IMG/VR virus record: IMGVR_UViG_3300034117_002447 | Location: 207,291 to 271,290 of that record | DNA length: 64,000 bases | Direction: 5' to 3' (one strand) | In this document: positions 35,395-58,797 of the stretch, one piece after another | Layout: every line of letters starts with the position of its first letter | How positions within the stretch are numbered: position 1 is the stretch's first letter | Notes under the pieces: generated by a model | What the model saw: only the letters and a program-made list of their open reading frames with translations | Told to the model about the DNA's origin: nothing | The model's database searches: none | Position numbers and translations under genes: made by a program

Positions 35395-35421
35395 ATTCTA
35401 CTGAATAAAAAGATTAAGTTT
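35395..35421 (-). promoter_or_regulatory. AAACT-N16-TAGAAT promoter (ruvC-like / gp55-like unit)
   Basis: Member of the eight-copy motif; divergent from the 35426 copy. Confidence 0.6.
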
Positions 35422-35425
35422 TTTG

Positions 35426-35452
35426 AAACCTTTGTAAAATGTACTGTAGAAT
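35426..35452 (+). promoter_or_regulatory. AAACC-N16-TAGAAT promoter (exonuclease)
   Basis: Member of the eight-copy motif. Confidence 0.6.
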
Positions 35453-35469
35453 AAGGGTGTTGGGAGGGT

Positions 35470-35570
35470 ATAGAGCTTAGAGTCTTAGGAACTTAGTCTA
35501 CTTATATTATTAATATAAAGAATTAAGTAAACTTACTACCTTAATCCTAAGCACTTAGCTACTTAGTCCT
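35470..35570. repeat. 8-nt-period CTTAG repeats flanking an A/T-only core (candidate origin)
   Basis: CTTAG at 35476, 35484, 35492, 35554 and 35562; variants at 35501, 35532 and 35540; inverted CTAAG at 35547. TTATATTATTAATATAAA at 35502-35519. Confidence 0.45.
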
Positions 35571-35609
35571 GATTTTTAGTATATTTCAACTAATTCATAA
35601 AATTAAAAT

Positions 35610-36353
35610 ATGTTTGATCCACATCAATTAGAAAAAATGCTGTTCTTCGATATAGAAACAGCTGGAACAGTTAGCCATTCTGGAGATCTTTCAGAGAAAA
35701 TGCAAGAACTTTGGGCAAATCGTTCGGAAATCCTTAGAAATCAATTGGGTGCAAAGTATCCAGACAATAAAGATAAATCAGACGATGAGCTTTATCAAAT
35801 GAAATCAGCTCTTCACGCTGAATTCGGTAGAGTTGTCTGTATTTCCTTCGGTAAAATTAAATGGGTGGACGGCGAACCCGTAGCTCAAATAGTTTCCTAC
35901 TCTGGAGAAGATGAAGAAGACATTTTACGTCAAGCCTTTAAGGTAATTGGTGGTCTTGGGAAAACTGGTGCTAAATTAACTGGCCATAACGTTAAAAGAT
36001 TCGATGTTCCATATCTTTGCAAAAGAGCATTTATACTAGGAGTAGAAACACCAATACCTCTTCAAGTATGGGATAAAAAACCTTGGGAAACTTCAATTAT
36101 TGATACTTCTGAGCTTTGGTCATTTGGTGCATGGCAAGAAGGATTCACTTCACTCGACTTATTAGCCACTATTCTAGGAGTCGATTCACCGAAAGACGAT
36201 ATCAAAGGTGATCAAGTTCATGAGAATTACTGGGCCGGTAATATCGAAAGAATTAAAGAATACTGCCAAAAAGACGTAATTACGTTAATTCAGATAGCTT
36301 TAAAGCTTTCTAACCTAAACCAAATTGAAAAATCTGGTATAATAATAAAGTAA
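35610..36353 (+). CDS. Stand-alone 3'-5' exonuclease, PolB-related (DnaQ fold)
   Basis: FFDIETA (ExoI), GHNVKRFDVPYL (ExoII), EYCQKDV (ExoIII). Confidence 0.85.
   Translation: MFDPHQLEKMLFFDIETAGTVSHSGDLSEKMQELWANRSEILRNQLGAKYPDNKDKSDDELYQMKSALHAEFGRVVCISFGKIKWVDGEPVAQIVSYSGEDEEDILRQAFKVIGGLGKTGAKLTGHNVKRFDVPYLCKRAFILGVETPIPLQVWDKKPWETSIIDTSELWSFGAWQEGFTSLDLLATILGVDSPKDDIKGDQVHENYWAGNIERIKEYCQKDVITLIQIALKLSNLNQIEKSGIIIK
36317..36343 (+). promoter_or_regulatory. AAACC-N16-TATAAT promoter (groEL)
   Basis: Inside the 3' end of the exonuclease gene, 26 nt before the groEL start. Confidence 0.6.
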
Positions 36354-36369
36354 AATAACCACACAATAA

Positions 36370-37953
<1,584 letters not shown>

Positions 37954-38052
37954 ATTTAAGATTAGCCATCGAAGAACGGCGCTTGTTGAGTAATACTCGC
38001 AGGCGCTGCTCTGTTTTAGAAGGGCGATAGATAAAATAAAGCAAAACCCTAA

Positions 38053-41000
38053 GTGGATAAAACATTTAAGGAAATATTAACAGATATTAAATGCGGAAAG
38101 CTAGCATCCCCAGCGTTTACGGAAGATGATTTAGCTAAAGTAAAAGCCTGTATTCCTGAACCAATAGCTCAACCTACTAAAGAGGTAAAAGTTACAGTTC
38201 CATCAGAGAGCTCATGCGTTAACGATGGATTAATCCAGGTTAAAAAGATCCTAACCGAACAGCTTTCGAAACAAGATGTAGTTGTTGAACTTGGAACAAT
38301 TAAAGGTAAAGTAGAAGAAGCACTAGATCATTACAAAGTCATTTCTAATTATTATAAGGCTAGGGTTGAATTCTTTACTTCCACCATAAGTACAGTTGAA
38401 CCTCTCACCTCCCAGTATCTGTATTGGACGGACGAGTATGATAGAACTAAAGCAATTGAAGATAAAATAATTGAGGACTATAATTCAACGTTTCAGTCGT
38501 TTGACTATGTAAATTATGGAATCAAGTTAGTAGTTTCACTAACTGATTCTCAATTTAAAACTATCACTACGTATAATTCAACTGTCTTATCTAATCTTAT
38601 TACCCAAACCTATTTTAACTATATTGTCAATACTCCAATATACCTCAAGTATTATACAGCTAGAAAAAATAGAATCTTAGCAGAAGAGCGTCAACTTCTT
38701 TCTAAGCAAGGAGCAGCAAATGCACTATCTCAAAGTATTCAAAACTATCCAGCCTTAAGCGATAGTTCAACAGTTGAGTCCACTTTAAATTCGCTAACTT
38801 CAAAAATAAGCGGTCAATTAATACCTATTTTTTCAGATACTGAATCTTCTCTAACTGGAGGACTTATTGCTCCAGCTAGAACGGCTGTGTTTTCAATGAG
38901 ATTAATCGATTTAGATTTTACTAAATTAACGGTCCCTAAATTATTGGAAAATGGAGAAACTTCTCAAGTTGAAAAAACATTAGTTATACGCAATAGCCCA
39001 TACCTAAAAAATTCTCCATTCTCTAATTCAGTTGCTACTAGTTGTCAGTCAATTCCATTTGAGCAATACAAACAGAATAGAGACTATGATTTTATCTCTG
39101 GTGCTTTATACAACTTAACTGCTAGCGGATATAGAGGGCTTTATAAAAAATTAGCCAATCCGATTTCAAATCTATATACACCAGAGGAAAGAGGATTAAC
39201 TGTTGATCCAACTAAAATTGATCCGTTAATAAAAGACGTTGAAAACGCGCCAGTTTCTTTAAAAGAAGGAGACATCACGTTTTATATAAGTAGTCAAGAA
39301 GCCTACTCTACCTTCTATGATACTGCTAATAAAAGTTTACCTGATAGAATTAAGAAAGAAAAGGAGCAGGTGTTTCCAGCGGAAATAGCACCAACTTTAA
39401 CCTCCCTATCTACTATTGCAAAAAGAGAAGTTGCTGACTTTTTTAGAAGGACTACTGACGCATCAATTAAATTAGCTAGACCGACTTCATATAGGGCAGG
39501 AGCTTCAACTGTTTATACACAAGGAGTATTCAAGTATTCTACGCTAGACACCGTGATTTCTCAAAGGTTAGCGTACTATCAAAAAGCATACGATGAAGCT
39601 GCTCTAAAAATACAGGCTTGTCAAAAAGATATCGCTAACTTAGATCTACTAATAAAAGAAAATTCAATGGACCCCAAGGTTCTTGAAGTTAAAATTTCCA
39701 AGATAAAATGTTTTAGCGAAGCAGCTAAGTCAAAAGCCGTTGCCAAAGATTGTGAAGCTGAAACTCTCGCGAAATTAGGAAAAGATCCTCTCTTTATTAG
39801 AACATTAAATGGAAATGATTCTAAATTACCTGACATGAATAACCCATGTTATTGGAAAGAGTTTGCAAAAGCGTTAAACAAAGTAAGTTTATTACCTATT
39901 CCTGATCTAAGCTCTCCATTATTTAGATATTATCCAATTAACAATATTATTCCAACTCCACTTGGTATAGTAATGATTCCTATACCTCAAAAGTGGACTC
40001 CGTTATTTTCTTTATCTACTCCGCTTGGCACAATTGTTACATTTATAACAATGCCAGTCGTAATTGTTGGAATCCCATTACCATCAGTTTACGTGTTATA
40101 CATAGCACCGGATGGTAGAAAATACATGCTAGTTGCTCCAAATATTCCATTCCTACTAATCCCAGGTGGATCTAAAGTTGGATTTGAGGTAGACAACAGC
40201 CCAGCTTCTCAGAACCCATTAGGTATAAATCCAACTGACCCATTTAAAGGACAGCTTACTAAAGGCTCTCTAAGTATACCAATTACAATTTCAGCAAAAG
40301 CATCAAAGGCAATTAGAGTTGCAACCGTCGCCGCGGCTGTTGCATTAGGAAAGGGCATTGACATAAAGAATGGAGCAGGAGCAGTGTTAGGACAAATTGA
40401 TCCTGTGACTTATCTTGCTAAATATACTGGGCTTTCTGAGAAATTAGCGGACGCCCTCGATATGGAAGCGTCCAATGATTTTACAAAACAAGTAAACGAA
40501 TTTAAGAGATCAATTAACAAGCAATTCGATAGACTTGGGGAAATTCAAATTACCGCGATAACTAAGTTAAAGGAAAAGACTAGAAACGAGAGAGACTCTC
40601 AAGTTAAAGGCGCTGAGTCTGAAGAAAACTTAGCAAAGAAGCGCGAAACTAAAAAGAAGGCTCGATCGCTTGATCCAATAACACTACAGTCTAAAATTGA
40701 TGGAGTGCTAGAAGATTTCAATAAGTACATTGATAAAATCAAATTAGGAACAATTTCATTCCCTAACGATCCGACTAAATTAAATCCACCTCTACCTAAT
40801 GCAGTTAGTGCGATGCAGCCAATTGTTGAACAAGCCGCAAAAGGCGAACTTAATCTTGACCTCGACTCAGTTAACTTTATTGCAAAGATTAAAAGAATGG
40901 CTGCTCAAGTAGATACCTCAAAATTAAAATCAAAAAAATCGTTTAATCTAAACAAGCAAGAAGATATTGTTGAATTTAAAAAAGCGATAAAAGAGTACAC

Positions 41001-42411
41001 AAAAGAGGCAATGGATTATCTGCAAGGAGTAAAGTCCCCAGCAGATGACATTGATCCAAATTTAAGTGATGAAGAAAAAGCAAGAATAAAAAAAGCAGCC
41101 GATCTTAGAAAGGCTCGCTTAAAGTCGGCACTGGCGTTTACTTCGCTATCAATAGTCTCACCGAGTTTAAAATTATTTGATCCATTTGCCCCATGCTGCT
41201 CAACTGAAGAGACTTCACTTGAATTACCAGCGTCTCCTCAAATATTAGCCGCGATTGCAATATTTAATGCGTTATTAGATGCAGTACTAAGCGGATTAAC
41301 CGTTGAATCACTAAAAGCCTTACTTGGAGATTCTCTATCTAATATTGGAATATCTAGCATAACAAGCCTATTTGATTCTATACTTTCAGCATTTCCACCA
41401 ATTGTTTTACCTAATAAAGCAGATTTAGTTGCAATTTCACAAGCAATGCTTATTCCAGTATTAACTGCATTACACGTCCCACAAGCACCAAATCCTTTGG
41501 GACTACCCTTTCCGATTCAAGTATCAATTCCATTAGACGCACTAATTAAGCCTCTTCTTAAATCAGCAATTGCTTACCTTCTTGAACTAATTTTAAGAAT
41601 GCTAGCCGATGCTGGAAATTTATTAACGTCCGGAGCCGGATCGGCTGCTTCTACGACAGTCGGTGAGATACTTCAATTAATACCATGTGGAAATTCACAA
41701 ACCGCTACTGTAACTACAACCGCCGCTTCAAAATTCGTCACAATTACTTTACCTAATGGATTTAAACTTAAGCTTCCTAAAATTCCAATGATTCCATTAG
41801 ACATAGTCAGTTATTTTTCATTACTTACCTCTACTGACTTGGTTGAATTAATCAGAAGCTTAATTAATACGGCAATCGACGGAATATTGCAACCGGTTAA
41901 GTCTATCGTTGAGCCAATTCTTGGATTAACTAAATCCTTAAAGGATCTATCGTTTAACATCATTGAATCAGCGAATCCATACATTCTTCCAATTAAATTA
42001 ATTATAATGGCGCTTCAATTACAGATACCTAATTCAACAAAGGTTAGACTCACTAATTTAGATGCAATGGATTTGATTAAAGCCGCCTATATTCCAGTTA
42101 TCACTGCTACTGAACCAGTCGTAAAAGAGATAGCATACTTGGGCGCAATCATATCGTGTTCTTTTCTAAGTAAGCCCGGCGTTCAGTTAGCTAGAGTAGC
42201 ATCAAGCCCATTTTTTAACCAGGATGATCTTCCGCCTTGGGAAAGATTAACTCATAAAAATCCATTATTTGCAATATTTCTGGATGAGTTAGCTTGGAGA
42301 TCAAGCCTACTTTCAACCGGCACCTTAATATTCCAAAGTAAAATGCCAGGGCTGTATCCAACCACCTGGGCACCAAGTATATTTGTTGATCCAGGAATTC
42401 ATACAATTTAA
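38053..42411 (+). CDS. Large hypothetical protein (1452 aa) with coiled-coils and Pro-rich hydrophobic segments
   Basis: Long uninterrupted ORF with a GTG start. No family recognised. Confidence 0.8.
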   Translation: MDKTFKEILTDIKCGKLASPAFTEDDLAKVKACIPEPIAQPTKEVKVTVPSESSCVNDGLIQVKKILTEQLSKQDVVVELGTIKGKVEEALDHYKVISNYYKARVEFFTSTISTVEPLTSQYLYWTDEYDRTKAIEDKIIEDYNSTFQSFDYVNYGIKLVVSLTDSQFKTITTYNSTVLSNLITQTYFNYIVNTPIYLKYYTARKNRILAEERQLLSKQGAANALSQSIQNYPALSDSSTVESTLNSLTSKISGQLIPIFSDTESSLTGGLIAPARTAVFSMRLIDLDFTKLTVPKLLENGETSQVEKTLVIRNSPYLKNSPFSNSVATSCQSIPFEQYKQNRDYDFISGALYNLTASGYRGLYKKLANPISNLYTPEERGLTVDPTKIDPLIKDVENAPVSLKEGDITFYISSQEAYSTFYDTANKSLPDRIKKEKEQVFPAEIAPTLTSLSTIAKREVADFFRRTTDASIKLARPTSYRAGASTVYTQGVFKYSTLDTVISQRLAYYQKAYDEAALKIQACQKDIANLDLLIKENSMDPKVLEVKISKIKCFSEAAKSKAVAKDCEAETLAKLGKDPLFIRTLNGNDSKLPDMNNPCYWKEFAKALNKVSLLPIPDLSSPLFRYYPINNIIPTPLGIVMIPIPQKWTPLFSLSTPLGTIVTFITMPVVIVGIPLPSVYVLYIAPDGRKYMLVAPNIPFLLIPGGSKVGFEVDNSPASQNPLGINPTDPFKGQLTKGSLSIPITISAKASKAIRVATVAAAVALGKGIDIKNGAGAVLGQIDPVTYLAKYTGLSEKLADALDMEASNDFTKQVNEFKRSINKQFDRLGEIQITAITKLKEKTRNERDSQVKGAESEENLAKKRETKKKARSLDPITLQSKIDGVLEDFNKYIDKIKLGTISFPNDPTKLNPPLPNAVSAMQPIVEQAAKGELNLDLDSVNFIAKIKRMAAQVDTSKLKSKKSFNLNKQEDIVEFKKAIKEYTKEAMDYLQGVKSPADDIDPNLSDEEKARIKKAADLRKARLKSALAFTSLSIVSPSLKLFDPFAPCCSTEETSLELPASPQILAAIAIFNALLDAVLSGLTVESLKALLGDSLSNIGISSITSLFDSILSAFPPIVLPNKADLVAISQAMLIPVLTALHVPQAPNPLGLPFPIQVSIPLDALIKPLLKSAIAYLLELILRMLADAGNLLTSGAGSAASTTVGEILQLIPCGNSQTATVTTTAASKFVTITLPNGFKLKLPKIPMIPLDIVSYFSLLTSTDLVELIRSLINTAIDGILQPVKSIVEPILGLTKSLKDLSFNIIESANPYILPIKLIIMALQLQIPNSTKVRLTNLDAMDLIKAAYIPVITATEPVVKEIAYLGAIISCSFLSKPGVQLARVASSPFFNQDDLPPWERLTHKNPLFAIFLDELAWRSSLLSTGTLIFQSKMPGLYPTTWAPSIFVDPGIHTI

Positions 42412-42437
42412 AACTCTAGGCAGTTTCTGTGTATAAT
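42411..42437 (+). promoter_or_regulatory. AAACT-N16-TATAAT promoter (S1-like gene)
   Basis: Member of the eight-copy motif. Confidence 0.6.
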
Positions 42438-42469
42438 TTATTAGTTAACTTTTTTAATCTAACAAAAAC

Positions 42470-43651
42470 ATGCAAAAAAACGAAAACGTCCAAGAAGTTA
42501 TTGATTTTGACTTACTGTTTAGCCAGGGAAATTCCCGAGTAAACAAAAGCATTAAATTAACTCCAGCGGATAAAAAAGCGGGCTTAAAGATTTTCTGTAA
42601 AGAACCTTATGCCCAAGAGCTTTACGACAAGTACTATTCATCAAATACATTCGGCGCAACCGCAAATAAAGACTTTGAAATAGGTCATGTTTGTAAAGTA
42701 ACTGCCAAGAAAATTGATTTTGAAAACAAACAAATCGAAGTTCAAGATGATGATTCCTTGTCTACTATCTTTGTTCCATTTAGAGAATTTAGCGAAGAGC
42801 CTTCTTTGTTATTACAGAATGAAACAAGTGCAAAGTTCAAAGTTGTTATCTACAAAGCCGATGCCGGCGATTATTTAGGATCAGAAAAACGTTGCGCTGC
42901 TCTTTCTTACCGAGACGATCTTAACGAGTTCTTAAAAGAAGAAAAATGGTTCTATGTTAAGGTTACTAACCTAGTTAAAGGAGGTTACCTTGCACTGTAT
43001 AAAGGAACAGTTAAATGTTTCCTACCTGGATCACATGCTGCTGCAAACGTTATTCGAGACTTCAATGAATACTTGAATAAAGAGATTCCAGTAATGATTG
43101 AGAACTACGATCAAACAAATGATCTATTCATTGTTTCATACAAGAAATATATTAAACAAACTTTACCTCAAAGAGTTCACGAACTTAAATTTGGAGAAAA
43201 GTACACAGGTATTTTAACTAACAAACCTTATGATTTCGGAATGTTCGTTGAATTCCAAAACTATTTTACCGGGCTATTACACAAAACTGAATTTGCAAAT
43301 TACGAAGAATTCAGTAAAGGTTATAAATCCGGAGATTCAATTGATTTCTATATCAAAGATATCGTAATCAAGAAAGGAGAGCCTAGAATTATTTTAACTG
43401 ATTCATTAGAGAAAGTAGGAGAAGAGCAGTTAACTTGGCAAAACCTAAAAGACCGAATCGAAGGTCAAACATTAAATTTCACACTTAACAAACAAACTTT
43501 TGTTTTAGAAATTGAGTTACCTGATTCAGATACAGTTTTTACAACTGACGTAAATCACCTTAAAGGTAGAACCAAGGTGAGCGATTCAGGCCAAATCCAA
43601 GTCTACAAAGTAGATGCGATTAGAAAGCAATTAAAGTTCGAATTCGTCTAA
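42470..43651 (+). CDS. Ribosomal protein bS1-like multi-S1-domain RNA-binding protein
   Basis: S1 repeats VKVTNLVKGGYLALYKG.VKCFLPGSH and YTGILTNKPYDFGMFVEFQNYFTGLLHKTEF...GDSIDFYIKDI, plus degenerate flanking domains. Confidence 0.8.
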   Translation: MQKNENVQEVIDFDLLFSQGNSRVNKSIKLTPADKKAGLKIFCKEPYAQELYDKYYSSNTFGATANKDFEIGHVCKVTAKKIDFENKQIEVQDDDSLSTIFVPFREFSEEPSLLLQNETSAKFKVVIYKADAGDYLGSEKRCAALSYRDDLNEFLKEEKWFYVKVTNLVKGGYLALYKGTVKCFLPGSHAAANVIRDFNEYLNKEIPVMIENYDQTNDLFIVSYKKYIKQTLPQRVHELKFGEKYTGILTNKPYDFGMFVEFQNYFTGLLHKTEFANYEEFSKGYKSGDSIDFYIKDIVIKKGEPRIILTDSLEKVGEEQLTWQNLKDRIEGQTLNFTLNKQTFVLEIELPDSDTVFTTDVNHLKGRTKVSDSGQIQVYKVDAIRKQLKFEFV

Positions 43652-43682
43652 TTTTATAAGTTGCGTGGTATTATAGTTTCGA

Positions 43683-43690
43683 TATAAATA
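43683..43690 (+). promoter_or_regulatory. T4-like late promoter (TATAAATA)
   Basis: Exact T4 late consensus in the intergenic region before nrdB. Confidence 0.5.
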
Positions 43691-43696
43691 ATCCAG

Positions 43697-43834
43697 ATGG
43701 ATAACTCGAAATTTAAAATACCACGCATTTTACTGTTCGCTGTTCACCTGGCTAACCATATCAAGCATTTTGCAACCACTATTAGCCGACAGACGACACC
43801 ATATTCGATTATTCAATCACTTACACACACTTAA
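43697..43834 (+). CDS. Possible 45-aa small ORF upstream of nrdB
   Basis: ATG 6 nt after TATAAATA (43683-43690): [45 protein letters not shown]. No family recognised. Confidence 0.3.
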
Positions 43835-43851
43835 TTAAAAAAATTACAAAA

Positions 43852-44814: not shown

Positions 44815-44828
44815 AAATACGAAACTAC

Positions 44829-47310: not shown

Positions 47311-47317
47311 ATAAATA
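47310..47317 (+). promoter_or_regulatory. T4-like late promoter (TATAAATA)
   Basis: Directly after the nrdA terminator and before the putative internal head proteins. Confidence 0.7.
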
Positions 47318-47337
47318 ACAGTAACAAATAGACTATT

Positions 47338-47907
47338 ATGGAAATACTTAACTTTAGTAAATTTAAACTGTTATTGGAAGCAGAAGGCGATCCAGAAACA
47401 GAGCCTGCAGCGGAACCGGTTGAACCACCCGCTGACGAAACTCCAGCTGAACCTGCTCCACCAGCAGATGCTCCAGCCGATGCTCCAGCACCATCATCTC
47501 CTGATCCAATGGCTGATCCTTTTGCTAGTGCAGCACTTCCGCCCGATCCAAATGCTCCAGTTGCTTCTTCTGGTACAGGTTCTACTCGAATCGTATTCTT
47601 AGATAAAGACAAGTCATGGCATTCGGAATTCACAGACGGTGGTGGAGTTAAGAGATACAAAGAATATGAATTGGCTCAAGCTGATCTAGATAAATGGATC
47701 ACCGATAACAACTTCACAGATAAAAAAGAACAGATTACAGTCGCTCTTACTGGAACAAAGGCTTTACCTGAAGACATATACGATAAATTAAAATCAGCAC
47801 TATCTTCTGATAAACTAGGGAAGGATCGTGGAGATATTGATATTAACTATGACGATAAGTCAATTCCATCTACTAGTGATCTCGATGTAATCTTCTTAAA
47901 GAAATGA
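47338..47907 (+). CDS. Acidic Pro/Ala-rich protein, putative internal head protein
   Basis: Directly follows TATAAATA (47310-47317). N-terminus MEILNFSKFKLLLE-A resembles a capsid-targeting/protease-cleavage leader. Confidence 0.65.
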   Translation: MEILNFSKFKLLLEAEGDPETEPAAEPVEPPADETPAEPAPPADAPADAPAPSSPDPMADPFASAALPPDPNAPVASSGTGSTRIVFLDKDKSWHSEFTDGGGVKRYKEYELAQADLDKWITDNNFTDKKEQITVALTGTKALPEDIYDKLKSALSSDKLGKDRGDIDINYDDKSIPSTSDLDVIFLKK

Positions 47908-48629: not shown

Positions 48630-48635
48630 TATTTA

Positions 48636-48662
48636 AAACCGGGTGAAGTTTCGTAATATAAG
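48636..48662 (+). promoter_or_regulatory. AAACC-N16-TATAAG promoter (Hc1-like gene)
   Basis: Member of the eight-copy motif. Confidence 0.55.
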
Positions 48663-48683
48663 ATACAAAAATACTTATTGATT

Positions 48684-48872: not shown

Positions 48873-48896
48873 TTTTAGATTAAAAGTTCACATTAG

Positions 48897-48928
48897 AGGG
48901 CGGGTATTAAAACTCGCCCTATTTTTTT
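48897..48928 (+). terminator. Intrinsic terminator after the Hc1-like gene
   Basis: AGGGCGGGT-ATTAAA-ACTCGCCCT followed by a T7 tract. Confidence 0.8.
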
Positions 48929-48930
48929 GG

Positions 48931-48957
48931 AAACCTCTCACACTTATTTAGTATAAT
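48931..48957 (+). promoter_or_regulatory. AAACC-N16-TATAAT promoter (SSB operon)
   Basis: Immediately after a terminator; member of the eight-copy motif. Confidence 0.65.
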
Positions 48958-48983
48958 TCTATAAATTAAAATCATTTTTGAAC

Positions 48984-50039: not shown

Positions 50040-50058
50040 AAAATAACAACATACAAAC

Positions 50059-50364: not shown

Positions 50365-50367
50365 ACT

Positions 50368-51477
50368 ATGAATTTAATCATTGACGGAAATGCGTTTCTG
50401 AATGTCGCAGTAAGTATCGCAAAAAATATATTAGCTAACGATAAGAGAGTTGGCGAAAAGTATTATGTCAATGACTTATTAAATGACGATAAGTTTATTC
50501 TAAAGCAGGTAAGCAAAGATACATTTAGACAATTTTCTGTAAATTACTTTGGCAGCATTCTTGCTCCATTTAAGGAAAACATCAGTTCAGTATTTTTTGT
50601 ATTTGACTCTAAGAGTTGGAGAAAGAAATATATCAAAGAACATTTTGAAACACACGGAGAAGGGGATTTCAGTTATAAAGGTCAAAGAAAATACGATGAT
50701 AAAATTTATCTGTTCTTTGAATACTTTCAAAATGAAATTCTAAGTACAATATCTGACGATTATGGAGTTGTAGTAAACCGTGTTCCTGGAGCAGAAGGTG
50801 ATGATTTAATTGCTTACATTTGCGAAAATTTAAAAGAAGATATTTGTATTTGGTCAGTAGACAAAGACTTAACCCAGTTACTTGAAAGTGACAAACGTAA
50901 AGTTATTTTGATTATGCCTAAGCAAATGACGAAATACAAAAAGATCTACACAACTGAAGATTTCGGTAAAGTTGAACCCGCTGAAGTTGACCTTTTTAAT
51001 TTTGATATTGACTCAATAGACAATTCAGCTGTAACTAACATAATCAACGACTTAACTCAAAAGGACTATCAACACTTAACCGTTGATCCAACTTTAGATA
51101 TCTTAGTTAAGTGTTTAGCGGGTGATGCATCAGACAATATTCCAAGAGTCCATCCCAAGATGACAGCCTCTAAAGTAACAAAAATTGTCGAATACGTAAA
51201 GCAATCGCTTCAATGGAAAGACGTTATTTACTTCATTGATTCAGGTGATCTAGGTTTCATGGATTTATTACGTGAAGTAACATGTGAAGTCCTTAAAATA
51301 AAGGAACCTGGTGAATGGCTGACGATCGAGAACAACCTTAATCGTAACAAGACCTTAATCAGATTAAGTACAGCAGTTTTTCCAAAAGACGTACTTGATG
51401 CAATTAAAGAAAACGTTGACTTGACTACTCGTAGAAAATTCAATTACTACCAATTCAAAAAAAATTACAAGAATTAA
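50368..51477 (+). CDS. 5'-3' exonuclease / flap endonuclease (T4 RNase H-like)
   Basis: IIDGN, VFDSKSWRK, YKGQRK, EGDDLIA, SVDKDLTQL, LAGDASDNIP. Confidence 0.9.
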   Translation: MNLIIDGNAFLNVAVSIAKNILANDKRVGEKYYVNDLLNDDKFILKQVSKDTFRQFSVNYFGSILAPFKENISSVFFVFDSKSWRKKYIKEHFETHGEGDFSYKGQRKYDDKIYLFFEYFQNEILSTISDDYGVVVNRVPGAEGDDLIAYICENLKEDICIWSVDKDLTQLLESDKRKVILIMPKQMTKYKKIYTTEDFGKVEPAEVDLFNFDIDSIDNSAVTNIINDLTQKDYQHLTVDPTLDILVKCLAGDASDNIPRVHPKMTASKVTKIVEYVKQSLQWKDVIYFIDSGDLGFMDLLREVTCEVLKIKEPGEWLTIENNLNRNKTLIRLSTAVFPKDVLDAIKENVDLTTRRKFNYYQFKKNYKN

Positions 51478-51809
51478 TGAGTACACCAATCAAAGGAGGA
51501 TTTATTCCTCTATTCGAAAGAATATTAGTTTTACCGGACTCAGTAGAGTCTAAAACTGAAACAGGCATCATTTTATCAGTTGATGCTAGAAAAAGACCCA
51601 ATACCGGAGTAGTAATTGCAGTAGGCCATCTGGTTTCCAGTAATTCAGGTTGCCCAATCAAAGAAGGCGATCGAGTTTTATATCAACGATACTCAGGACT
51701 TGACGTCCAGTGGGACGGTACTAACTACCACATCATTATGGCAAACGATCTTGTCGCCATTATAAACAAAGACGAGACTACACAATTTGAACTTAAAGAA
51801 AATGCTTAA
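51477..51809 (+). CDS. groS: Co-chaperonin GroES
   Basis: PLFERILV...KTETGIIL mobile loop, GVVIAVG, KEGDRVLY..YSG, DLVAII. Confidence 0.92.
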   Translation: MSTPIKGGFIPLFERILVLPDSVESKTETGIILSVDARKRPNTGVVIAVGHLVSSNSGCPIKEGDRVLYQRYSGLDVQWDGTNYHIIMANDLVAIINKDETTQFELKENA

Positions 51810-52374
51810 GAAATTTAAACAATTCGTAAACGAAGGTAAAGAGGGTAAATATCGAGTGTTCTGTGATTTAGATGGAGTCCTTGTCGATTTTGATAGAGGC
51901 TTTCAAGATATTGAAGAAAACACTGAAAATCTTTCACCTAAGGAATACGAAAAGAAAAACGGAAAGAACTCAATTTGGCCATTACTGGATAAGTTAGGAG
52001 CAGACTTCTGGGCTAACCTACAATGGACCAAAGACGGCAGAGAATTATGGGATTACTTACAAAGATATGACCCAATTTTATTATCTGCACCAAGCCGTAG
52101 TCCTGAGTGTCTTATTGGTAAGACTCGTTGGGTAAATTCAAATTTAGGAATTGACCAAGAGCCAGTAACTGACCCAGCGGATATGACTCCTGATACTAGG
52201 CTTGTTCTAGATCAAGACAAATGGAAGTACGCAACTAGCGAAAAAGACATTCTAATCGACGATTTTAAAAAGAAATTGGAGAAATGGATTGAGCACGGCG
52301 GAACGGGTATCTTACATAACGATTCAACTGATACAGTTAGAGTTATGGAAGAGATCATGACCGGTCGTGACTAA
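51802..52374 (+). CDS. HAD-superfamily phosphatase (5'(3')-deoxyribonucleotidase-like) with a capsid-targeting-like leader
   Basis: FCDLDGVLVDFD (motif I), LSAP, ILIDD (motif IV). ATG start MLKKFKQFVNE-G overlaps the groES stop. Confidence 0.8.
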   Translation: MLKKFKQFVNEGKEGKYRVFCDLDGVLVDFDRGFQDIEENTENLSPKEYEKKNGKNSIWPLLDKLGADFWANLQWTKDGRELWDYLQRYDPILLSAPSRSPECLIGKTRWVNSNLGIDQEPVTDPADMTPDTRLVLDQDKWKYATSEKDILIDDFKKKLEKWIEHGGTGILHNDSTDTVRVMEEIMTGRD

Positions 52375-52428
52375 TAGTTCTTGGACTTAAACCAAGTGGT
52401 GGAATTCGACTTCCAAGTCGGCCCTAAC

Positions 52429-52461
52429 AAAAAAAGGACTCTATTACTAGAGTCCTTTTTT
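52429..52461. terminator. Bidirectional intrinsic terminator between the convergent HAD and sheath genes
   Basis: AAAAAAAGGACTCTA-TTAC-TAGAGTCCTTTTTT, with a T-tract on both strands. Confidence 0.85.
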
Positions 52462-52479
52462 ATTTTATTAATGTATTCC

Positions 52480-55400
52480 TTAGAATGAAGGAGTAAATCC
52501 TGTTGAGTTAGAAGCCAATTGACCTCCAGCTCTTGTGATTGTAATACGATTGATGAACTTGTGAATACCTCTTGGGAAGTCAACGATAATATCGATGATA
52601 CCTGCATTGTTTTCAAGAACTTCAGGACCGTTATTTGAATCATCAAATACAATATCGAAAGTTGCAATACCTCTAGCGTCTTGAACTGCAGTTAAGTAGT
52701 TTTTAACTAGAGTTTTAACTCTTAATCGTGTAGTAGGATCATTGAATTCAAATAAGAAGTTCAATAAGATTCTCTCAACGTCTCTTTCGATTGTTACTAA
52801 TGCCTCTCTAACGTGAACGTTATTAAGTGCTGATCTTACTCTTTGATAACCTGTGTTATTAGAGAAAATCATTACTCCAAAACCTCTACGTCTAACAATT
52901 AAGTTAAATCCAACAGGCTCTAAGTAAGCGCGATCGTCATCAGTTAAATCGTATTCAAGTCCAGTAACTTCAGCTTCTGTAATAATACCTCTTTTACCAG
53001 CAACGATAGAGAAAGTATTTCCACTTGAGTATTTCTTCATGTACGTGTTAGCAACGAACGCTGCAGGCGGAATAGATTTGTTTTTACCTCCTTCGAAAAT
53101 TAACAAGTTAGGCATAAAGTATGCAGCGTAAGTAGAGATTGCAATACCATTTTTATCTCCAGTTGCAAATCCAAAAGTAAATGCTGGGTTAGAAGATAAA
53201 TTACCACCAGTTGAAATGTATTCAGCTGATACTAAGTTAGTATTAAAATCAATAAAGCTTGGGTCACTTGATTTTTCGTATTGTGCTAAAGATGGAGCAT
53301 TACAGATAGCTAACGCTTTTCCGTGATTTGCTGCAAGTTGAACAAGTTGTTGTTTTGATGCATTTGAAATTTGACCTTCATACGAATCAATAATATAACG
53401 ATAATCAAGAGTCTCATTATCCGCTAGAGTTGATGCAATATTAGTTGAATCAAACATATAGTCAAGAATTTCATCTTGTCTAGAAGCTGTACCGTTTGGA
53501 TAAAGAGCAGTCTCATCAACTACCATTGCTGGAACGTGGAAACCTCGTAAATTAGTTACGTAATTTTTAATTCCTTTATAAACCTTAACGGTTTGACCAG
53601 TAAGATCAATTCCTTGAACATTAGCATCGTATGCATTATCTACCGTAATCGTGTACTTTAAAGTTTTAGTAGGAGTACTAGAAGGTCCAACTGGAACTGA
53701 TATTAGTTGAGCGTAAACTGATTTAATTTTTAAAACTCGATCTCTAATTACATTATCACCATTCGCATCAGTTGCGATCTTAGCTTTAATGTATTGACCT
53801 GGTACAAAGAACCCATCAATTAATGCTCTGCGTGCTGAGTCGTACGCTAAATTAACAGTTTCTTTCTTAGCCACATTTCCATAAAGATTCGTATTCAATG
53901 TGAACACTAATTGATTTGGAGAAAAATACTGATAGTTATTTGCTCCAACTGTATTAAAGAAAGCTGAACTAGTTAAGTCAAACTCATAATTAAATTGGTT
54001 AACTACCGTTGATTTAATGTGTAATAATTCAAGCGCTCCATCTGTGATGTATTGAGCATCTACTTGATTAGTTCTAGTTATATCCGAATATGCTGTAAAT
54101 TCAATATACTTAATTTGACCAGTAGTTTGAGTTTTAACTAAGTTGTCAGTTCCTAAATATAGAGTAGTAGGAGTACTAGACGGTGCAGCTAAATAGTGTA
54201 AAGTATCTCCAGCTTTAACAAATCCATTTGCCCATGCTTCATATAATTTACTTCCTTGAGTAGCCGTAATATAGAGGTCTCCACCTGTATTCATTGTGTA
54301 TGTTTCACCAGCTGCTAAAGTAGTTGAGTGAGCAAGACCGTCTAACTCAAAGTAGTATTCGTATCCAGCTGATTTTTTGTAACTTAACACGTCGATTAGA
54401 GCAATTGGATCAGTTCCGCTTATTCCATTATCTACAGTGTATAGTGTTTTACTACCATCAGTTGTATTAAGCTCACCAAATCCGTGACCTACTAAATCAA
54501 TACGCTGTTGTGCAATAGGTTCAGTTGAACTACCGCTATTAAACGTAGAGCTAGTTAAGTCAATTAAGTCTACTTTTTTGTAGTCAATTGCACAAAATAC
54601 GTTAGAGCTACTGAATTTTCTATTAAACAGTGTATCTAATGATGCAGTTGATCCAGCCAAATCCTTAAAGTCAGGAATGATTGCTCCAATTGTACGATTA
54701 ACTACAACAACATCTCTTAGTGATAAAAAGTCGTCCAGTTTAGAAAGAATGATTCCGTTTGCTGTAAAGTACTGTCTGTAAATAGGGTCAGTCGACAAAC
54801 GAATATAGTCAGTCCAATCACCATCAACTACTGCAAGCTCAACAAAGTAATCTGCAACATAATCGTCCGGGTGTAAAAATTCTGGAACTTCTACTCGGTC
54901 TCCTAATAGTTGATAGTATTCTTTAACTTTAATATCATAACCAGTAGTATCAGCAATTCTTGCCCATGCAGTAACTGCTTTCTTAGAAAGATTTACTAAA
55001 CTTAAGATTTTGTTAGCATCCTTGTCTATTGTTCCAGTCGCAGGGAACGTATCACCTAACGCAAGATTTTTGTATTTGTTAACCGCATCAACATCAGCGA
55101 ACCACAATTTTTGAGTATTATAGAATCTTGAAATGCTATCTTGATAAAGATTTGCCGACCACGTTGAATTGTTAGATGCTGACTCAGTATTAAATGTTGT
55201 AAAGTATGCAACATCTGTGTCAGCAATCGGTAACAAGTTTAAAGCGTAAACTGGGCCTTGACGTAAAGCAACATCAATAGTTCTGTGGAAAAAGCTTCCG
55301 TTTTTTTCCAATTTAGTGTCAGTCTCACCATATACAGCGGATAGTGAACGATTGTCATTCACTAATACTACTGAATTGATAGGTCCTTTTTTGCTAGAGC

Positions 55401-55512
55401 CGATTACTAATCTTCCAGTTGAAAGAGGTAAGCTAAGGTTAGTGCTTTCGTCAATTTCTACCGTATAGACACCACTTGCTTTGTATCGGTTCAGATTTAA
55501 TTTTTCTGCCAT
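52480..55512 (-). CDS. Contractile tail sheath protein (T4 gp18-like, 1010 aa)
   Basis: N-terminal SGVYTVEIDES...GSSKKGP; C-terminal SALNNVHVRE...FLFEFND..TR...DDSNN.PEV. Confidence 0.92.
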   Translation of the reverse strand: MAEKLNLNRYKASGVYTVEIDESTNLSLPLSTGRLVIGSSKKGPINSVVLVNDNRSLSAVYGETDTKLEKNGSFFHRTIDVALRQGPVYALNLLPIADTDVAYFTTFNTESASNNSTWSANLYQDSISRFYNTQKLWFADVDAVNKYKNLALGDTFPATGTIDKDANKILSLVNLSKKAVTAWARIADTTGYDIKVKEYYQLLGDRVEVPEFLHPDDYVADYFVELAVVDGDWTDYIRLSTDPIYRQYFTANGIILSKLDDFLSLRDVVVVNRTIGAIIPDFKDLAGSTASLDTLFNRKFSSSNVFCAIDYKKVDLIDLTSSTFNSGSSTEPIAQQRIDLVGHGFGELNTTDGSKTLYTVDNGISGTDPIALIDVLSYKKSAGYEYYFELDGLAHSTTLAAGETYTMNTGGDLYITATQGSKLYEAWANGFVKAGDTLHYLAAPSSTPTTLYLGTDNLVKTQTTGQIKYIEFTAYSDITRTNQVDAQYITDGALELLHIKSTVVNQFNYEFDLTSSAFFNTVGANNYQYFSPNQLVFTLNTNLYGNVAKKETVNLAYDSARRALIDGFFVPGQYIKAKIATDANGDNVIRDRVLKIKSVYAQLISVPVGPSSTPTKTLKYTITVDNAYDANVQGIDLTGQTVKVYKGIKNYVTNLRGFHVPAMVVDETALYPNGTASRQDEILDYMFDSTNIASTLADNETLDYRYIIDSYEGQISNASKQQLVQLAANHGKALAICNAPSLAQYEKSSDPSFIDFNTNLVSAEYISTGGNLSSNPAFTFGFATGDKNGIAISTYAAYFMPNLLIFEGGKNKSIPPAAFVANTYMKKYSSGNTFSIVAGKRGIITEAEVTGLEYDLTDDDRAYLEPVGFNLIVRRRGFGVMIFSNNTGYQRVRSALNNVHVREALVTIERDVERILLNFLFEFNDPTTRLRVKTLVKNYLTAVQDARGIATFDIVFDDSNNGPEVLENNAGIIDIIVDFPRGIHKFINRITITRAGGQLASNSTGFTPSF

Positions 55513-55535
55513 CGAGTTTGCGTATTATTTTAAGT

Positions 55536-55607
55536 TATTTATTTATCGCATTAGTCCCAAATTCATAACTTTTGAACTTGGTCTAGTTGTTGCTACTGTT
55601 ATTTATC
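55536..55607 (-). promoter_or_regulatory. Tandem late promoters for the tail sheath (GATAAATA at 55540-55547 and 55600-55607)
   Basis: Two GATAAATA boxes (the first overlapping AATAAATA) upstream of the sheath ATG. Confidence 0.65.
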
Positions 55608-55628
55608 AGTATTATTCTAACTAAACTT

Positions 55629-55655
55629 AAACCTTTTTCACTTTTAGGGTAAAAG
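55629..55655 (+). promoter_or_regulatory. AAACC-N16-TAAAAG promoter (dUTPase/polymerase operon)
   Basis: Member of the eight-copy motif. Confidence 0.55.
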
Positions 55656-55676
55656 ATCCTGTAAAACTACATAAAT

Positions 55677-56156
55677 ATGGCAAATACAGACAACTCGTGT
55701 GCAAAATTAGAAATTAAAGATCACTGGTCAGACAGAACAGAAGTGAACGAAGACACATTAGGCCAAATCATGGACATTCAGGCTGATACACAAAAGAATG
55801 TTTACGGGTATGACTTTGCCAACATGAATCTTAGGGAGCTTATGACCTTTTGGCACATGAATAACCATGCAATGATAGATGAGATCCACGAAGCAACCGA
55901 TGCATTAGGTGGAATCAATGACGGTTCAGGTAATGCTATTTGGAAGCGTTGGAAATCCGCACATGAAGGCTACTCAGATAAAAAGTTCTCAGATTTATCA
56001 GAGTCTGATCAGCTTGAGTGCAAATTTGAAATAATTGATATGCTACACTTCTTTATGAACTATGCAGTATCAGTAGGAATGACTTCTCAGGAAATGTTCA
56101 ATATGTACATGTCTAAGAATGAGGAGAACAAGGCTCGCCAACAGAGAGGTTATTAA
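55677..56156 (+). CDS. Dimeric all-alpha dUTPase/dCTPase (T4 gp56-like)
   Basis: DEIHE...WKRWK...EIIDMLHF...Y..KNEEN..RQ..GY. Confidence 0.85.
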   Translation: MANTDNSCAKLEIKDHWSDRTEVNEDTLGQIMDIQADTQKNVYGYDFANMNLRELMTFWHMNNHAMIDEIHEATDALGGINDGSGNAIWKRWKSAHEGYSDKKFSDLSESDQLECKFEIIDMLHFFMNYAVSVGMTSQEMFNMYMSKNEENKARQQRGY

Positions 56157-56174
56157 TTTAGTAAAATATACAAT

Positions 56175-57557
56175 ATGATTGTAAGTACAGAATTTCACAC
56201 AGAAGACTCAGCTCTTCTAATCTCATATTATAAACCAGATGGAAATATCGGATTCATGAAGAAACCAATACTTCCGCATGACCTGTACAACTGGAATCTA
56301 ACGCCAACTCCAACTGAACATAGAAATTGGGATGGAAGATTCCTAAAGAAGGTTCAAGGAAAATGGTTAAGTCGATTTAGGCTTGAAGAGTTAACTCAAA
56401 CTAGGTTAGCCGAAACTGAGCTCGCTTCAATTTATTCAGATGATAGCCCAAAGAAATACTATCTGGATATTGAGATTCAGCTTATTTCTCAAGATTTCCC
56501 AGATCCAGCTAAAGCCGCAATGCCGGTTAATATGATTACTTTCGTAAATGAAGATAACGTATGTTTCGTAATGTCAACTATGCGAGATCTTGCACCTGAT
56601 GTAGTTACTCGACTAGAAGACGAAGTAAATGATTATTTTAAAGCGCATGAGCAAACGTTCGTAGTTAAGCACCTATTCTTTGAACATGAAGAAGACTTAA
56701 TGAAAACTTTCTTTCACAAAGTTCTTCCAAAGATTCCTTTCTTAACAGGCTGGAACGTAATTGGATTTGACTGGTTGTATTTAATTAATCGTTGTAAGAA
56801 TTTAGGAATTGAACCAATGTTAAACATGCCTTCTAAAACCCTAATCGGCAAGGCCAAAATGCCAGTTCACTTAGGACTTCTGGATTACATGGAAGTGTTT
56901 ATGAATACTAAACCTTACAAAGTAGTTGAGAATTACAAGTTAGATTACATTGCAAATTTAGTATTAGGAACAACTAAATTACATAGTGAATATGCAACAA
57001 TGATGGAAGCTCAGCAAGACGTTGAGAACTTTACAAAGTATAACATTATCGATACAATTCTAGTTAAACTAATTGAAGATAAGCTTGGATTGCTTGATGT
57101 AGCCTTCGCTATCTCCAAGTTTGCAAAGGTCGATGTATCAAAAGTATTCTCTGCAGTATTCATTACTGAAACTCTAATGTGTCGTGAATTCTTAGAAAGA
57201 GGTTTGTATATGGCAAACGACCGAAGAGAATTAGAAGAAGATGCAACTTACGATGGAGCATACGTCGCTAAGCCTGAACCTGGATATTACAAATACGTTT
57301 CATGTTTTGACTTTGCCTCAATGTATCCCAATATCCAAATCCAATTTAATATTTCACCAGATTCATACGGTGGAAAAATTAAAGCTGGTCAAGAACCTAC
57401 GATTGATCAGGTCTTAACCAAGAACGACACGTTATTTACTAAGAAATACGATTCAGCTGCTCGAACTATTTTAACAAGACTATACAATGGTCGTGTTGAT
57501 ACTAAGGACGAAATGAAAAAATTAGAAGAACAATTGTCCAGTGATAAAGTGGCTTAA
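56175..57557 (+). CDS. Family B DNA polymerase, N-terminal subunit (exonuclease + palm motif A); split gene
   Basis: YLDIE, TGWNVIGFDW, YKLDYIA, YNIIDT, YDGAYV, DFASMYP...NISPDS. Ends in the first fingers helix, without KxxxNSxYG or YGDTDS. Confidence 0.88.
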   Translation: MIVSTEFHTEDSALLISYYKPDGNIGFMKKPILPHDLYNWNLTPTPTEHRNWDGRFLKKVQGKWLSRFRLEELTQTRLAETELASIYSDDSPKKYYLDIEIQLISQDFPDPAKAAMPVNMITFVNEDNVCFVMSTMRDLAPDVVTRLEDEVNDYFKAHEQTFVVKHLFFEHEEDLMKTFFHKVLPKIPFLTGWNVIGFDWLYLINRCKNLGIEPMLNMPSKTLIGKAKMPVHLGLLDYMEVFMNTKPYKVVENYKLDYIANLVLGTTKLHSEYATMMEAQQDVENFTKYNIIDTILVKLIEDKLGLLDVAFAISKFAKVDVSKVFSAVFITETLMCREFLERGLYMANDRRELEEDATYDGAYVAKPEPGYYKYVSCFDFASMYPNIQIQFNISPDSYGGKIKAGQEPTIDQVLTKNDTLFTKKYDSAARTILTRLYNGRVDTKDEMKKLEEQLSSDKVA

Positions 57558-57576
57558 AAAAATAAAAAACATAATT

Positions 57577-58221
57577 ATGAATTACGATATCGAAACGATG
57601 ATGGCTATTAAGAGTAGCTTTCAATCAAATGAGTTTCAATGGATTAAAACAAATGATCCACGAAAAGCTGGTACTATTGTAACCGTTAGGGACGTACTGC
57701 CTGGACGAAACGGTCGATTTCTAGCAGTCCTATCTGATGGAAGTCAAATGGACACAGATGCAGTTTCATCAGACTTAATGATGATCACTGACGACCAGCC
57801 TAGATTATCAATGGCTGAAATCCAGTCAATTAACTACATACCTTCCTTAACTGAAGATATTCAAGTTGCTCCCGAAATTCCTGCTGAATTTGCTAATACG
57901 GTAAAAGAGATTGCACCAGTAGCTAGACCTGCTGAACCAGTTAATCAAACAGCTCTTCGTCAACAAGTTCAAGTAGATCCAAGCGATCTATTTGGAATGT
58001 TTTCATTGGAGGATACTGACCTAAACTTAGCAGTTAGGATTAAACTTCCAAGTAAGAGTCTATTGAAAATGATGTACACTAATTCCAAGAACAAAGAGGA
58101 GTTTTTGACTAAACTGTCAAACTATATAAATAACAGCATAACCGTTGATGCGATTAAGAAAACTATGAAGAAGACTTTAAGCGCATCACCTAAACAAAAA
58201 GGAGTAGCCGCAAATGACTAA
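57577..58221 (+). CDS. Hypothetical protein (~214 aa)
   Basis: ATG at 57577 after an A-rich leader (track start GTG at 57541). Confidence 0.75.
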   Translation: MNYDIETMMAIKSSFQSNEFQWIKTNDPRKAGTIVTVRDVLPGRNGRFLAVLSDGSQMDTDAVSSDLMMITDDQPRLSMAEIQSINYIPSLTEDIQVAPEIPAEFANTVKEIAPVARPAEPVNQTALRQQVQVDPSDLFGMFSLEDTDLNLAVRIKLPSKSLLKMMYTNSKNKEEFLTKLSNYINNSITVDAIKKTMKKTLSASPKQKGVAAND

Positions 58222-58771
58222 TAACGAAACTAGAACCCAAATCGGAAAATTTAAGGTGTTAACTTTAAAAAAGGACCAACATTCAGCCGATTACTTATCA
58301 GATGATCTAGATTATATCTGCATTATTCCATTTGAATTAAGCCCAGATACTAAGTCAATTAAGTCAATATTTTTACTCGAGTCTCCGAATATGGTAAATG
58401 GCCAAACCGGTAATTCATTAGTAATTGACACAGTTAACCCAGATCTAGATAAAACTCCATACGACTCAGTATGTCGAGCTTTAATTGAGGAAGCTGGTTT
58501 AAATATCGATGAGGTTGGACTTACTGAAGACAGTATTTTTTACTTGGGAGATATTTCAATGAATTCTCCAATGTCGCTAAAGATGCACTGTTACGGAGTT
58601 AACCTAACTTCAAAGAACGACATTTCTTTTACTCGAAACCTATCAAAGGACCACTTCACTAAAGATAATTCTAATATAGTGAAAGTCGGATTTCACCAAG
58701 TAGTAAATGGAGACTACTCAGACACAACGGTCCTTTCTGGATCATTTTTATTAATTTCATACTTTAACTAA
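58214..58771 (+). CDS. Nudix-fold protein with a degenerate Nudix box
   Basis: DKTPYDSVCRALIEEAGL resembles the REUxEExGU half of the Nudix box, followed by YLG. Confidence 0.5.
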   Translation: MTNNETRTQIGKFKVLTLKKDQHSADYLSDDLDYICIIPFELSPDTKSIKSIFLLESPNMVNGQTGNSLVIDTVNPDLDKTPYDSVCRALIEEAGLNIDEVGLTEDSIFYLGDISMNSPMSLKMHCYGVNLTSKNDISFTRNLSKDHFTKDNSNIVKVGFHQVVNGDYSDTTVLSGSFLLISYFN

Positions 58772-58797
58772 ACCCATTTTAGTATCCCTTGTAAAAG
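58770..58797 (+). promoter_or_regulatory. AAACC-N17-TAAAAG promoter (uvsX/helicase operon)
   Basis: Member of the motif family, with a 17-nt spacer and the same TAAAAGAT as the 55650 copy. Confidence 0.5.

Follow-up and report, generated by a model that had tools for sequence, protein, structure and literature searches.

The 64,000-nucleotide (nt) stretch of DNA analysed here, referred to below as the window, makes up the final 64 kb of an IMG/VR record of 271,290 bp (G000) which is rated 100% complete and represents a T4-like jumbo myovirus with a G+C content of 38%. Eight short elements in the window consist of the pentamer AAACY (Y, C or T) followed, after a spacer of 16 nt at seven of them and 17 nt at one (58770), by a hexamer of the form TA[TAG]AA[TG]. 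The first-pass annotation of the window had listed these elements as a non-canonical class of promoters, and a pattern search recovered all eight on the strands and at the coordinates it gave; in each of the eight cases the element lies upstream of, and points towards, a non-structural gene, as had been claimed (Table 1, in which genes are simple longest-open-reading-frame (ORF) calls of our own). We put the probability that the elements belong to a true class of promoters, recognised by a sigma-70-family factor which the phage encodes, at roughly 70%, and we infer from the sequence that the sites fire, when they do so and which sigma factor reads them. The class is proposed to comprise the middle promoters of this 271-kb phage.

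Table 1. Candidate promoters and sigma factor genes; positions are those of the window, or of the whole record where preceded by G000 (aa, amino acids; ECF, extracytoplasmic function)
Feature	Position	Strand	Context
Middle-class candidate, AAACT-N16-TAGAAT	35395-35421	-	24 nt upstream of RuvC-like ORF (34705-35370), then gp55-like late sigma gene
Middle-class candidate, AAACC-N16-TAGAAT	35426-35452	+	157 nt upstream of 3'-5' exonuclease ORF at 35610
Middle-class candidate, AAACC-N16-(g)TATAAT	36317-36343	+	Inside 3' end of exonuclease gene, 26 nt upstream of GroEL-like ORF (36370-37953)
Middle-class candidate, AAACT-N16-(g)TATAAT	42411-42437	+	32 nt upstream of S1-domain protein ORF (42470-43651)
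Middle-class candidate, AAACC-N16-TATAAG	48636-48662	+	21 nt upstream of ATG (48684) of 62-aa ORF
Middle-class candidate, (g)GAAACC-N16-(a)GTATAAT	48931-48957	+	Upstream of gp32-like ORF (ATG 48984)
Middle-class candidate, AAACC-N16-(g)TAAAAG	55629-55655	+	21 nt upstream of dUTPase-like ORF (55677)
Middle-class candidate, AAACC-N17-TAAAAG (or AACCC-N16)	58770-58797	+	22 nt upstream of UvsX/RecA-like ORF (58820-60010)
Likely ninth member, AAACT-N17-TAAAAT	27669-27696	-	15 nt upstream of 1199-aa ORF (24054-27653)
Late-type ATAAATAA boxes	7054, 10526, 14000, 14035, 17296, 27109, 30934, 34255, 43684, 47311, 55535, 55539, 55599, 58126		Mostly just upstream of structural genes
Three late-class ATAAATAA boxes	55535-55606	-	Upstream of tail sheath gene (52480-55512)
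Leaderless-type examples	G000 82607, 104796, 138062, 152941, 155321, 158137, 163045	-	
Sigma, 332 aa	G000 128818-129816		Regions 1.2, 2, 3 and 4; RpoS/RpoD-like; outside window
Sigma, 253 aa (242-253)	G000 124784-125545		Regions 1.2-2 primary-type; region 4 fits ECF-type models; outside window
Sigma, 199 aa	G000 111245-111844		ECF type; outside window
Sigma, 209 aa	G000 179924-180553		ECF-type regions 2 and 4; outside window
gp55-like sigma, 139 aa	34281-34700	-	Region 2 only; second gene behind the 35395-35421 promoter

A degenerate pattern of this kind, AAACY-spacer-TA[TAG]AA[TG], must be evaluated against the matches that an A+T-rich genome would produce by chance. The window contains 14 matches, compared with 3.36 +/- 1.82 (largest 9) in 100 dinucleotide-preserving shuffles, none of which reached the observed count. 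When spacers of 8-26 nt were counted across G000, as the first-pass annotation had recommended, AAACY was found to pair with TAdAAk (d, not C; k, G or T) almost only at spacers of 16 nt (27 matches) and 17 nt (15 matches), against a background of about 5 matches at each other spacer. Promoter positions, defined as those in which the match ends 0-150 nt upstream of an ORF on the same strand, make up 8.9% of all positions and yet hold 23 of these 42 strict matches, 15 at spacer 16 and 8 at spacer 17, compared with 0-2 at other spacers; the corresponding excess is 15- to 25-fold. Had the pattern been equally common inside genes or at random spacings, this would, as stated in advance, have refuted the class; neither is the case. 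Chance plausibly supplies a part of the matches, in that the background of about 5 is seen at every spacer and five of the 14 matches in the window, none of them cited before, lie within genes or in poor positions, a number in line with the roughly 3 expected by chance. As an account of the whole set it is scarcely credible in view of the shuffles, the sharp peak at spacers 16 and 17 and the promoter-position excess, and also of the comparative data below, in which the peak is replicated in four further genomes and absent from a control, and the boxes are conserved across diverged spacers.

The same boxes emerge when they are not specified beforehand. An unbiased search over 5-mers and spacers upstream of start-proximal TAnAAk sequences returned AAAAC at 17 nt, AAACC at 16 nt and AAACT at 16 nt as its top combinations, and although dyads enriched in intergenic DNA are dominated by runs of A and T, the only clear dyads of another kind are AAAC-N15-AGTA and AAAC-N17-TATA. 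A matrix aligned on the -10 hexamer reveals a fuller box, t-t-(a)-G-TA-n-AA-T-a, in which T, A, A and A are invariant over 6-7 nt, together with weaker information at -35. An iterated position-weight matrix drifted to shifted registers and so inflated its list of matches; its counts were not used, and all counts given here come from fixed patterns. The consensus is (a/g)AAAC(C/T) at -35, a spacer of 16 nt (sometimes 17), and (g)TA-n-AA-(T/G)(a) at -10. A scan for canonical TTGACA/TATAAT promoters revealed no enrichment (54 found, 61.8 expected), in agreement with the earlier statement that the upstream box is not TTGACA.

The class was next compared with four related genomes (G001, G002, G003 and G005), whose UvsX proteins are 83-94% identical, and with a control, the T4-like Flavobacterium phage MaF61, whose host belongs to the phylum inferred below for the host of the G000 phage. 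G001 is 94% complete; G003 (70%) and G005 (50%) both lack the early region described below and are therefore uninformative about the candidate sigma factor. A simple pattern count with a reversed-pattern control yielded only a 1.3- to 2-fold excess in the relatives, for which reason the spacer-resolved test was needed. In that test the numbers of promoter-position matches at spacers 16 and 17 were 17 and 10 in G001, 8 and 6 in G002, 7 and 8 in G003, and 5 and 6 in G005, while MaF61 has 4 matches in all at the two spacers, none of them in promoter position, even though the late ATAAATA box is retained there.

At orthologous promoters, which include those of gp32, UvsX, the S1 protein, the RuvC/late-sigma operon, the dUTPase-like gene and several others, the boxes and their spacing are kept while the spacer sequence has turned over. 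The most extensive comparison is provided by 45 distinct upstream regions of UvsX from relatives, in which (A/G)AAC(C/T), or AAGATCC in some lineages, stands exactly 16 nt from GTA-n-AA-(G/T), and conservation and information peak at both boxes and are low in the spacer. In 14 relatives the site corresponding to 55629 has AAAC[CT] or AAGATCC at -35, always 16 nt from the -10 box. The site at 48931 is kept as AAAC[CT]-N16-GTA[CA]AA[TG] in all four relatives with unrelated spacers, that at 42411 as AAAAC[CT]-N16-GTATAAT in G001 and G002 with differing spacers, and that at 35395 in the corresponding regions of G001, G002 and G003, where the spacer has changed. Those at 35426 (in the form AAACC-N16-TAAAAA), 36317 and 48636 have counterparts in G001. 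A further match which the first-pass annotation did not cite, at 27669, is likely to be a ninth member, because it stands 15 nt before the ORF of 1199 aa and has a conserved counterpart in a relative (AAACT-N16-TAAAAT in G001).

Several of the sites have local features of their own. The promoters at 35395 and 35426 are divergent, with their -35 boxes 4 nt apart, and the second is the weakest-placed member of the set, as a second -10-like sequence, TAGTATATT (near 35585), lies nearer to the exonuclease ORF. The 157-nt stretch which contains this sequence (35453-35609) also contains several CTTAG/ACTTAG repeats and has no match in Rfam; a long leader and a small RNA are both conceivable. The promoter at 48931 lies directly 3' of a terminator-like hairpin (48897-48920 plus a T run), and the dUTPase-like ORF behind the promoter at 55629 is the first gene of an operon that contains the family B DNA polymerase (PolB). 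At the UvsX promoter, an inverted repeat (TTTAGTATC ... GATACTAAA, 58776-58806; fold z -4.9) encloses the -10 box. It is kept in relatives with other arm sequences, though not in lineages of the GAACT type, and is not seen at the other seven sites; no consensus RNA structure was found across 14 UvsX upstream regions. The repeat may fold into a hairpin in the RNA of read-through transcripts, or may be an element of the terminator type.

Whether the class could be read by the transcription machinery of the host depends on the identity of the host, which is probably a member of the Bacteroidota. This assignment rests on four considerations: the nearest phages by UvsX and tail sheath are the Prevotella Lak phages, uncultured huge phages, Flavobacterium phage MaF61 and Tenacibaculum phages; among the NCBIfam subfamily models, that for Bacteroidetes fits both ECF sigma factors of the phage best; a Shine-Dalgarno-like core is present at only 14 of 316 ORFs, and -3 is commonly an A, both of which agree with what has been described for Flavobacterium (PMC6847099); and the closest cellular homologues of the ribonucleotide reductase (RNR) large subunit (59-63% identity) are almost all from Bacteroidota. 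The RNR large subunit also has a 91% identical counterpart on CAIWBA010000291.1, a 254,203-bp sequence in the bin of a metagenome-assembled genome labelled "Bacteroidetes bacterium". This sequence is as long as a phage genome and probably represents a relative of the phage that was placed in the bin of its host.

The Bacteroidota primary sigma factor recognises TTTG/TAnnTTTG rather than TATAAT (PMC6847099). None of the eight sites carries the -7 element TAnnTTTG (TAHHTTTG), and the class as a whole fits neither the -33 TTTG nor the -7 box, so a sigma factor other than that of the host would be needed. The earlier statement that the boxes are not the Bacteroidota pair is borne out by the presence of the host-type -7 box in a separate class of promoters elsewhere in the genome. 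This early class consists of ten long, conserved cassettes on the minus strand at 122.4-130.6 kb of G000, about 80 kb outside the window, in each of which a conserved (A)TTGTTAATAAC element some 50 nt upstream is followed by TTTTTTAGTGTCAA and then by TTATATTT(G/A). The 3' end of the cassette, T-n-TCAA-N12-TTATATTT(G/A), fits the Bacteroidota -7 element (box TATATTTG), the form TATATTT(G/A) being that expected of a primary-sigma promoter. The cassettes precede small ORFs and two sigma genes, and the cluster is also found in G001 and G002.

T4-like phages use sigma appropriation for their middle genes, and it is accordingly conceivable that the class is transcribed by the host polymerase with the host sigma factor, AAACY being bound by an unrecognised phage activator in the manner of MotA and AsiA. 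Such an activator, if it were unrelated to the characterised ones, could escape family searches, but the arrangement is very improbable here. The MotA families (MotA_activ, PF09114; MotCF, PF09158) and AsiA (PF09010) have no match in the genome even at E 10, and AAACY stands at the normal -35 distance of 16-17 nt from the -10 box. The -10 box is in addition unlike the TAnnTTTG of the Bacteroidota primary sigma, which the phage already uses in its separate early class, and MaF61, with a host of the same phylum and just one weak match to sigma region 2, does not have the motif.

The search for a second sigma factor suggested by the first-pass annotation found five ORFs of the sigma-70 family in G000, four of which contain regions 2 and 4 and lie outside the window (Table 1). 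Of the proposal that a phage sigma factor or a MotA-like activator is encoded outside the window, the first part is therefore favoured, two of the four outside sigma genes standing behind host-type early promoters, and the second is not. The fifth, inside the window, is a gp55-like protein, which scores 24.9 bits against Pfam Sigma70_r2 (cut-off 24) and matches PHROG 234, "late sigma transcription factor", at E 1e-16; its gene is conserved in G001, G002 and G003, in which the orthologues of the promoter ahead of it (35395-35421) are also kept. Regions 1.2-2 of the sigma encoded at G000 124784-125545 match a solved primary SigA at E 1e-29. One early cassette is directly upstream of this gene, and an early cassette also heads the operon with the 332-aa sigma. 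The gene at 124784-125545 and the early promoter cluster are conserved together in G001 and G002, the 209-aa ECF sigma is conserved in G001, G002 and G003, and the 332-aa and 199-aa sigmas are absent from G001 and G002; because two of the five genes are absent in this way, the sigma set evidently varies within the phage family. The best candidate for the reader of the class is the conserved early sigma at 124784-125545, an assignment to which we give about even odds. No characterised orthologue of this protein was found, tblastn against GenBank phages having returned only generic matches of about 30% identity.

Several observations count against reading the eight sites as one class with this sigma factor as its reader. 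About 10 of the 42 strict genome-wide matches, or about a quarter, are expected by chance, and the -35 box is tolerant, with AAAACT, AGAACT and AAGATCC coexisting within one relative. The candidate sigma was chosen by conservation, gene position and domain similarity. The class reads AAAC-N16/17-GTA, which resembles the promoters of ECF sigma factors; a 209-aa protein with ECF-type regions 2 and 4 is among the conserved sigmas of the family; and strong tTAGTATAATAA promoters occur without a -35 box, so that what is treated here as one class may in fact be two.

The resemblance to ECF promoters, which have an AAC-containing -35 box (TGAAAC, GGAAC), a spacer of 16-17 nt and a -10 box beginning with (C)GT, raises the possibility that the class is read by the conserved 209-aa ECF sigma rather than by the early group-3-like sigma. 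The position of the ECF gene speaks against this, as it lies downstream of the genes for the baseplate wedge, the large terminase and PhoH, with a late ATAAATAA box and no early-type promoter in front of it, and a protein made so late would be available only after the genes that it would have to switch on, including that of the late sigma. The -10 box is moreover long, being of the TAnAAT type, and its invariant A and T are typical of sigma factors of groups 1-3; a -35 box is also missing from many promoters that share this -10 box, which would be unusual for an ECF sigma. No promoter class that could be assigned to the ECF sigmas was found. On balance we regard a reading by the 209-aa protein as improbable.

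The promoters which have a strong tTAGTATAATAA box and no -35 box, often directly after terminators, also bear on a second possibility, namely that two classes overlap and that the AAACY promoters and the extended tTAGTATAATAA promoters are read by different early sigmas, the 332-aa protein being an example of a reader for the latter. Among 45 start-proximal GTAnAAT boxes, 34 have no AAACY at -35, several of them standing directly after terminator hairpins where there is no room for a -35 box, and the 332-aa protein, with its regions 1.2, 2, 3 and 4, is likewise an early gene by position. This gene is missing in G001 and G002, yet start-proximal GTAnAAT boxes with the same geometry relative to the ATG persist there. 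The two sets of promoters share the same -10 core, and the weakest -10 boxes (TAAAAG, TATAAG) carry the best AAACC, as would be expected if a single sigma factor traded one element against the other. A division of the class between two sigmas therefore seems unlikely, if somewhat less so than a reading by the ECF protein.

Distances between a -10 box and the ATG show two modes: the first is 6-8 nt for GTAnAAT boxes and 5-6 nt for ATAAATA boxes, and the second, separated from it by a gap, spans about 13-30 nt; the geometry is the same in G001 and G002. This distribution, with its peak at 6-8 nt, is what would be predicted for leaderless and leadered genes if a -10 box had its transcription start about 7 nt downstream, and it lends indirect support to the view that the boxes are genuine -10 elements. 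In the short mode the A of the ATG coincides with the expected start, which suggests that many mRNAs are leaderless. Throughout the genome, numerous genes have an ATG that follows the end of a TATAAT-type -10 box by exactly 6 nt, or that of an ATAAATA-type box by exactly 5 nt.

The ATAAATA boxes just mentioned constitute a third class, of which there are 87 copies of the form ATAAATA(A/C) in G000, without a -35 box and with about two thirds just upstream of genes; for the ATAAATA core, 66 of 96 occurrences stand no more than 100 nt upstream of a gene, in most cases a structural one. The three late boxes ahead of the tail sheath gene share their intergenic region with the middle promoter at 55629 on the opposite strand. 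Among the other late-type ATAAATAA boxes of the window, that at 43684 precedes the region of the RNR small subunit and that at 47311 precedes an ORF at 47338.

The position of the early genes, the conservation of the components and the placement of the gp55-like gene behind a middle promoter together suggest a cascade from the host sigma through an early phage sigma to the middle class and from there to the late class. In a first step, the host RNA polymerase with the host primary sigma would read the approximately ten early promoters and produce small early proteins and phage sigmas. An early phage sigma of the sigma-70 family would then replace the host sigma on the host core polymerase, with region 2, which is primary-like, recognising the -10 box of TAnAAT type and region 4, which has diverged, recognising AAACY at -35, and would activate the window's operons for replication, recombination and nucleotide metabolism together with the operon of the gp55-like late sigma. 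In the last step the gp55-like protein would read the ATAAATAA late promoters of the structural genes. Slightly more tentatively than the choice of reader, it may be suggested that the transcription programme is self-contained and unreadable by the host, that the early sigma reads a hybrid of an ECF-style AAAC -35 box and a -10 box, TAnAAT, in the style of Proteobacteria and Firmicutes, and that many of the middle and late mRNAs are leaderless.

Phage sigma cascades are textbook biology which has been worked out in a few phages of Firmicutes and Proteobacteria; in the Bacillus phage SPO1, for example, the host sigma A serves the early genes, the phage sigma gp28 the middle genes and gp33/34 the late genes. 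The proposed system would resemble that of SPO1 in its host-type early promoters, in an early sigma-70-family phage sigma with -35 and -10 middle boxes of its own, and in the use of a further sigma for late genes. It would differ in its consensus, in the phylum of its host and in a late step of the T4 gp55 type. The cascade of SPO1 is stated in PMC13401047. In comparison with the middle promoters of T4, the class likewise serves replication and recombination genes of a T4-like phage and likewise combines a TATAAT-like -10 box with an upstream box that is not that of the host, but there is no detectable MotA or AsiA homologue, a complete phage sigma is available, and the box stands at -35 and not near -30, where the MotA box is centred, about 12 nt from the -10 box.

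The promoters of ECF (group 4) sigmas such as Bacillus sigma W and E. coli sigma E share with the class an AAC-containing -35 box (AAAC[CT], GAACT or GAAAC in the class), a spacer of 16-17 nt and a -10 box with G-T on its upstream side, and are unlike it in having a short CGT/GTC in place of a TAnAAT box of 6-7 nt and in strictly requiring the -35 box; variants without a -35 box and the late-looking operon of the conserved ECF gene are further differences. The late promoters of T4 consist of an 8-bp box that has no -35 element, and other T4-like phages carry boxes resembling it (PMC2988020). The ATAAATA(A/C) class of the present phage, which has no -35 box and is accompanied by a gp55-family sigma, resembles this T4 system, in which gp55 acts with gp33 and the sliding clamp, while the eight sites, with a different -10 box and a -35 box, do not match the 8-bp TATAAATA-type element. 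According to the passages available from the survey of Iyer et al. 2021 (PMC7824862), T4-like "group 2" jumbo phages, which include Prevotella Lak and Tenacibaculum phages, encode minimal and RpoD-like sigmas and are expected to recruit the host polymerase. Those passages list sigma genes and contain no promoter sequences. A literature search found no report of the promoters of this group of jumbo phages, nor of the timing of expression in large phages of Bacteroidota.

The promoter consensus is thus new, while the kind of system to which it would belong, a phage sigma cascade, is already known. The timing of expression in large phages of Bacteroidota is of interest because the promoters of these bacteria are unusual and Shine-Dalgarno sites are lacking, and the present results yield a testable map of the sequences that mark early, middle and late genes in a family of uncultured freshwater jumbo phages that is widespread, together with the promoter types behind which its sigma genes stand and one specific pairing of sigma and promoter. 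The consensus should permit better annotation of operons and timing in many related IMG/VR genomes, and the pairing, if true, would provide a compact orthogonal expression switch for genetic tools in Bacteroidota.

A few additional properties of the window may be recorded. No close relative was found among GenBank phages by megablast with 15 kb of the window, and neither Rfam families nor tRNAs were found in it. In addition to the GroEL-like chaperonin encoded behind the promoter at 36317, the phage encodes a GroES-like co-chaperonin (51477-51809). The PolB ORF (56175-57557) is only 460 aa long and covers the exonuclease domain and the first third of the polymerase domain, and the two ORFs that follow it (57541-58221 and 58214-58771) match no family; the family B DNA polymerase may accordingly be split or interrupted.

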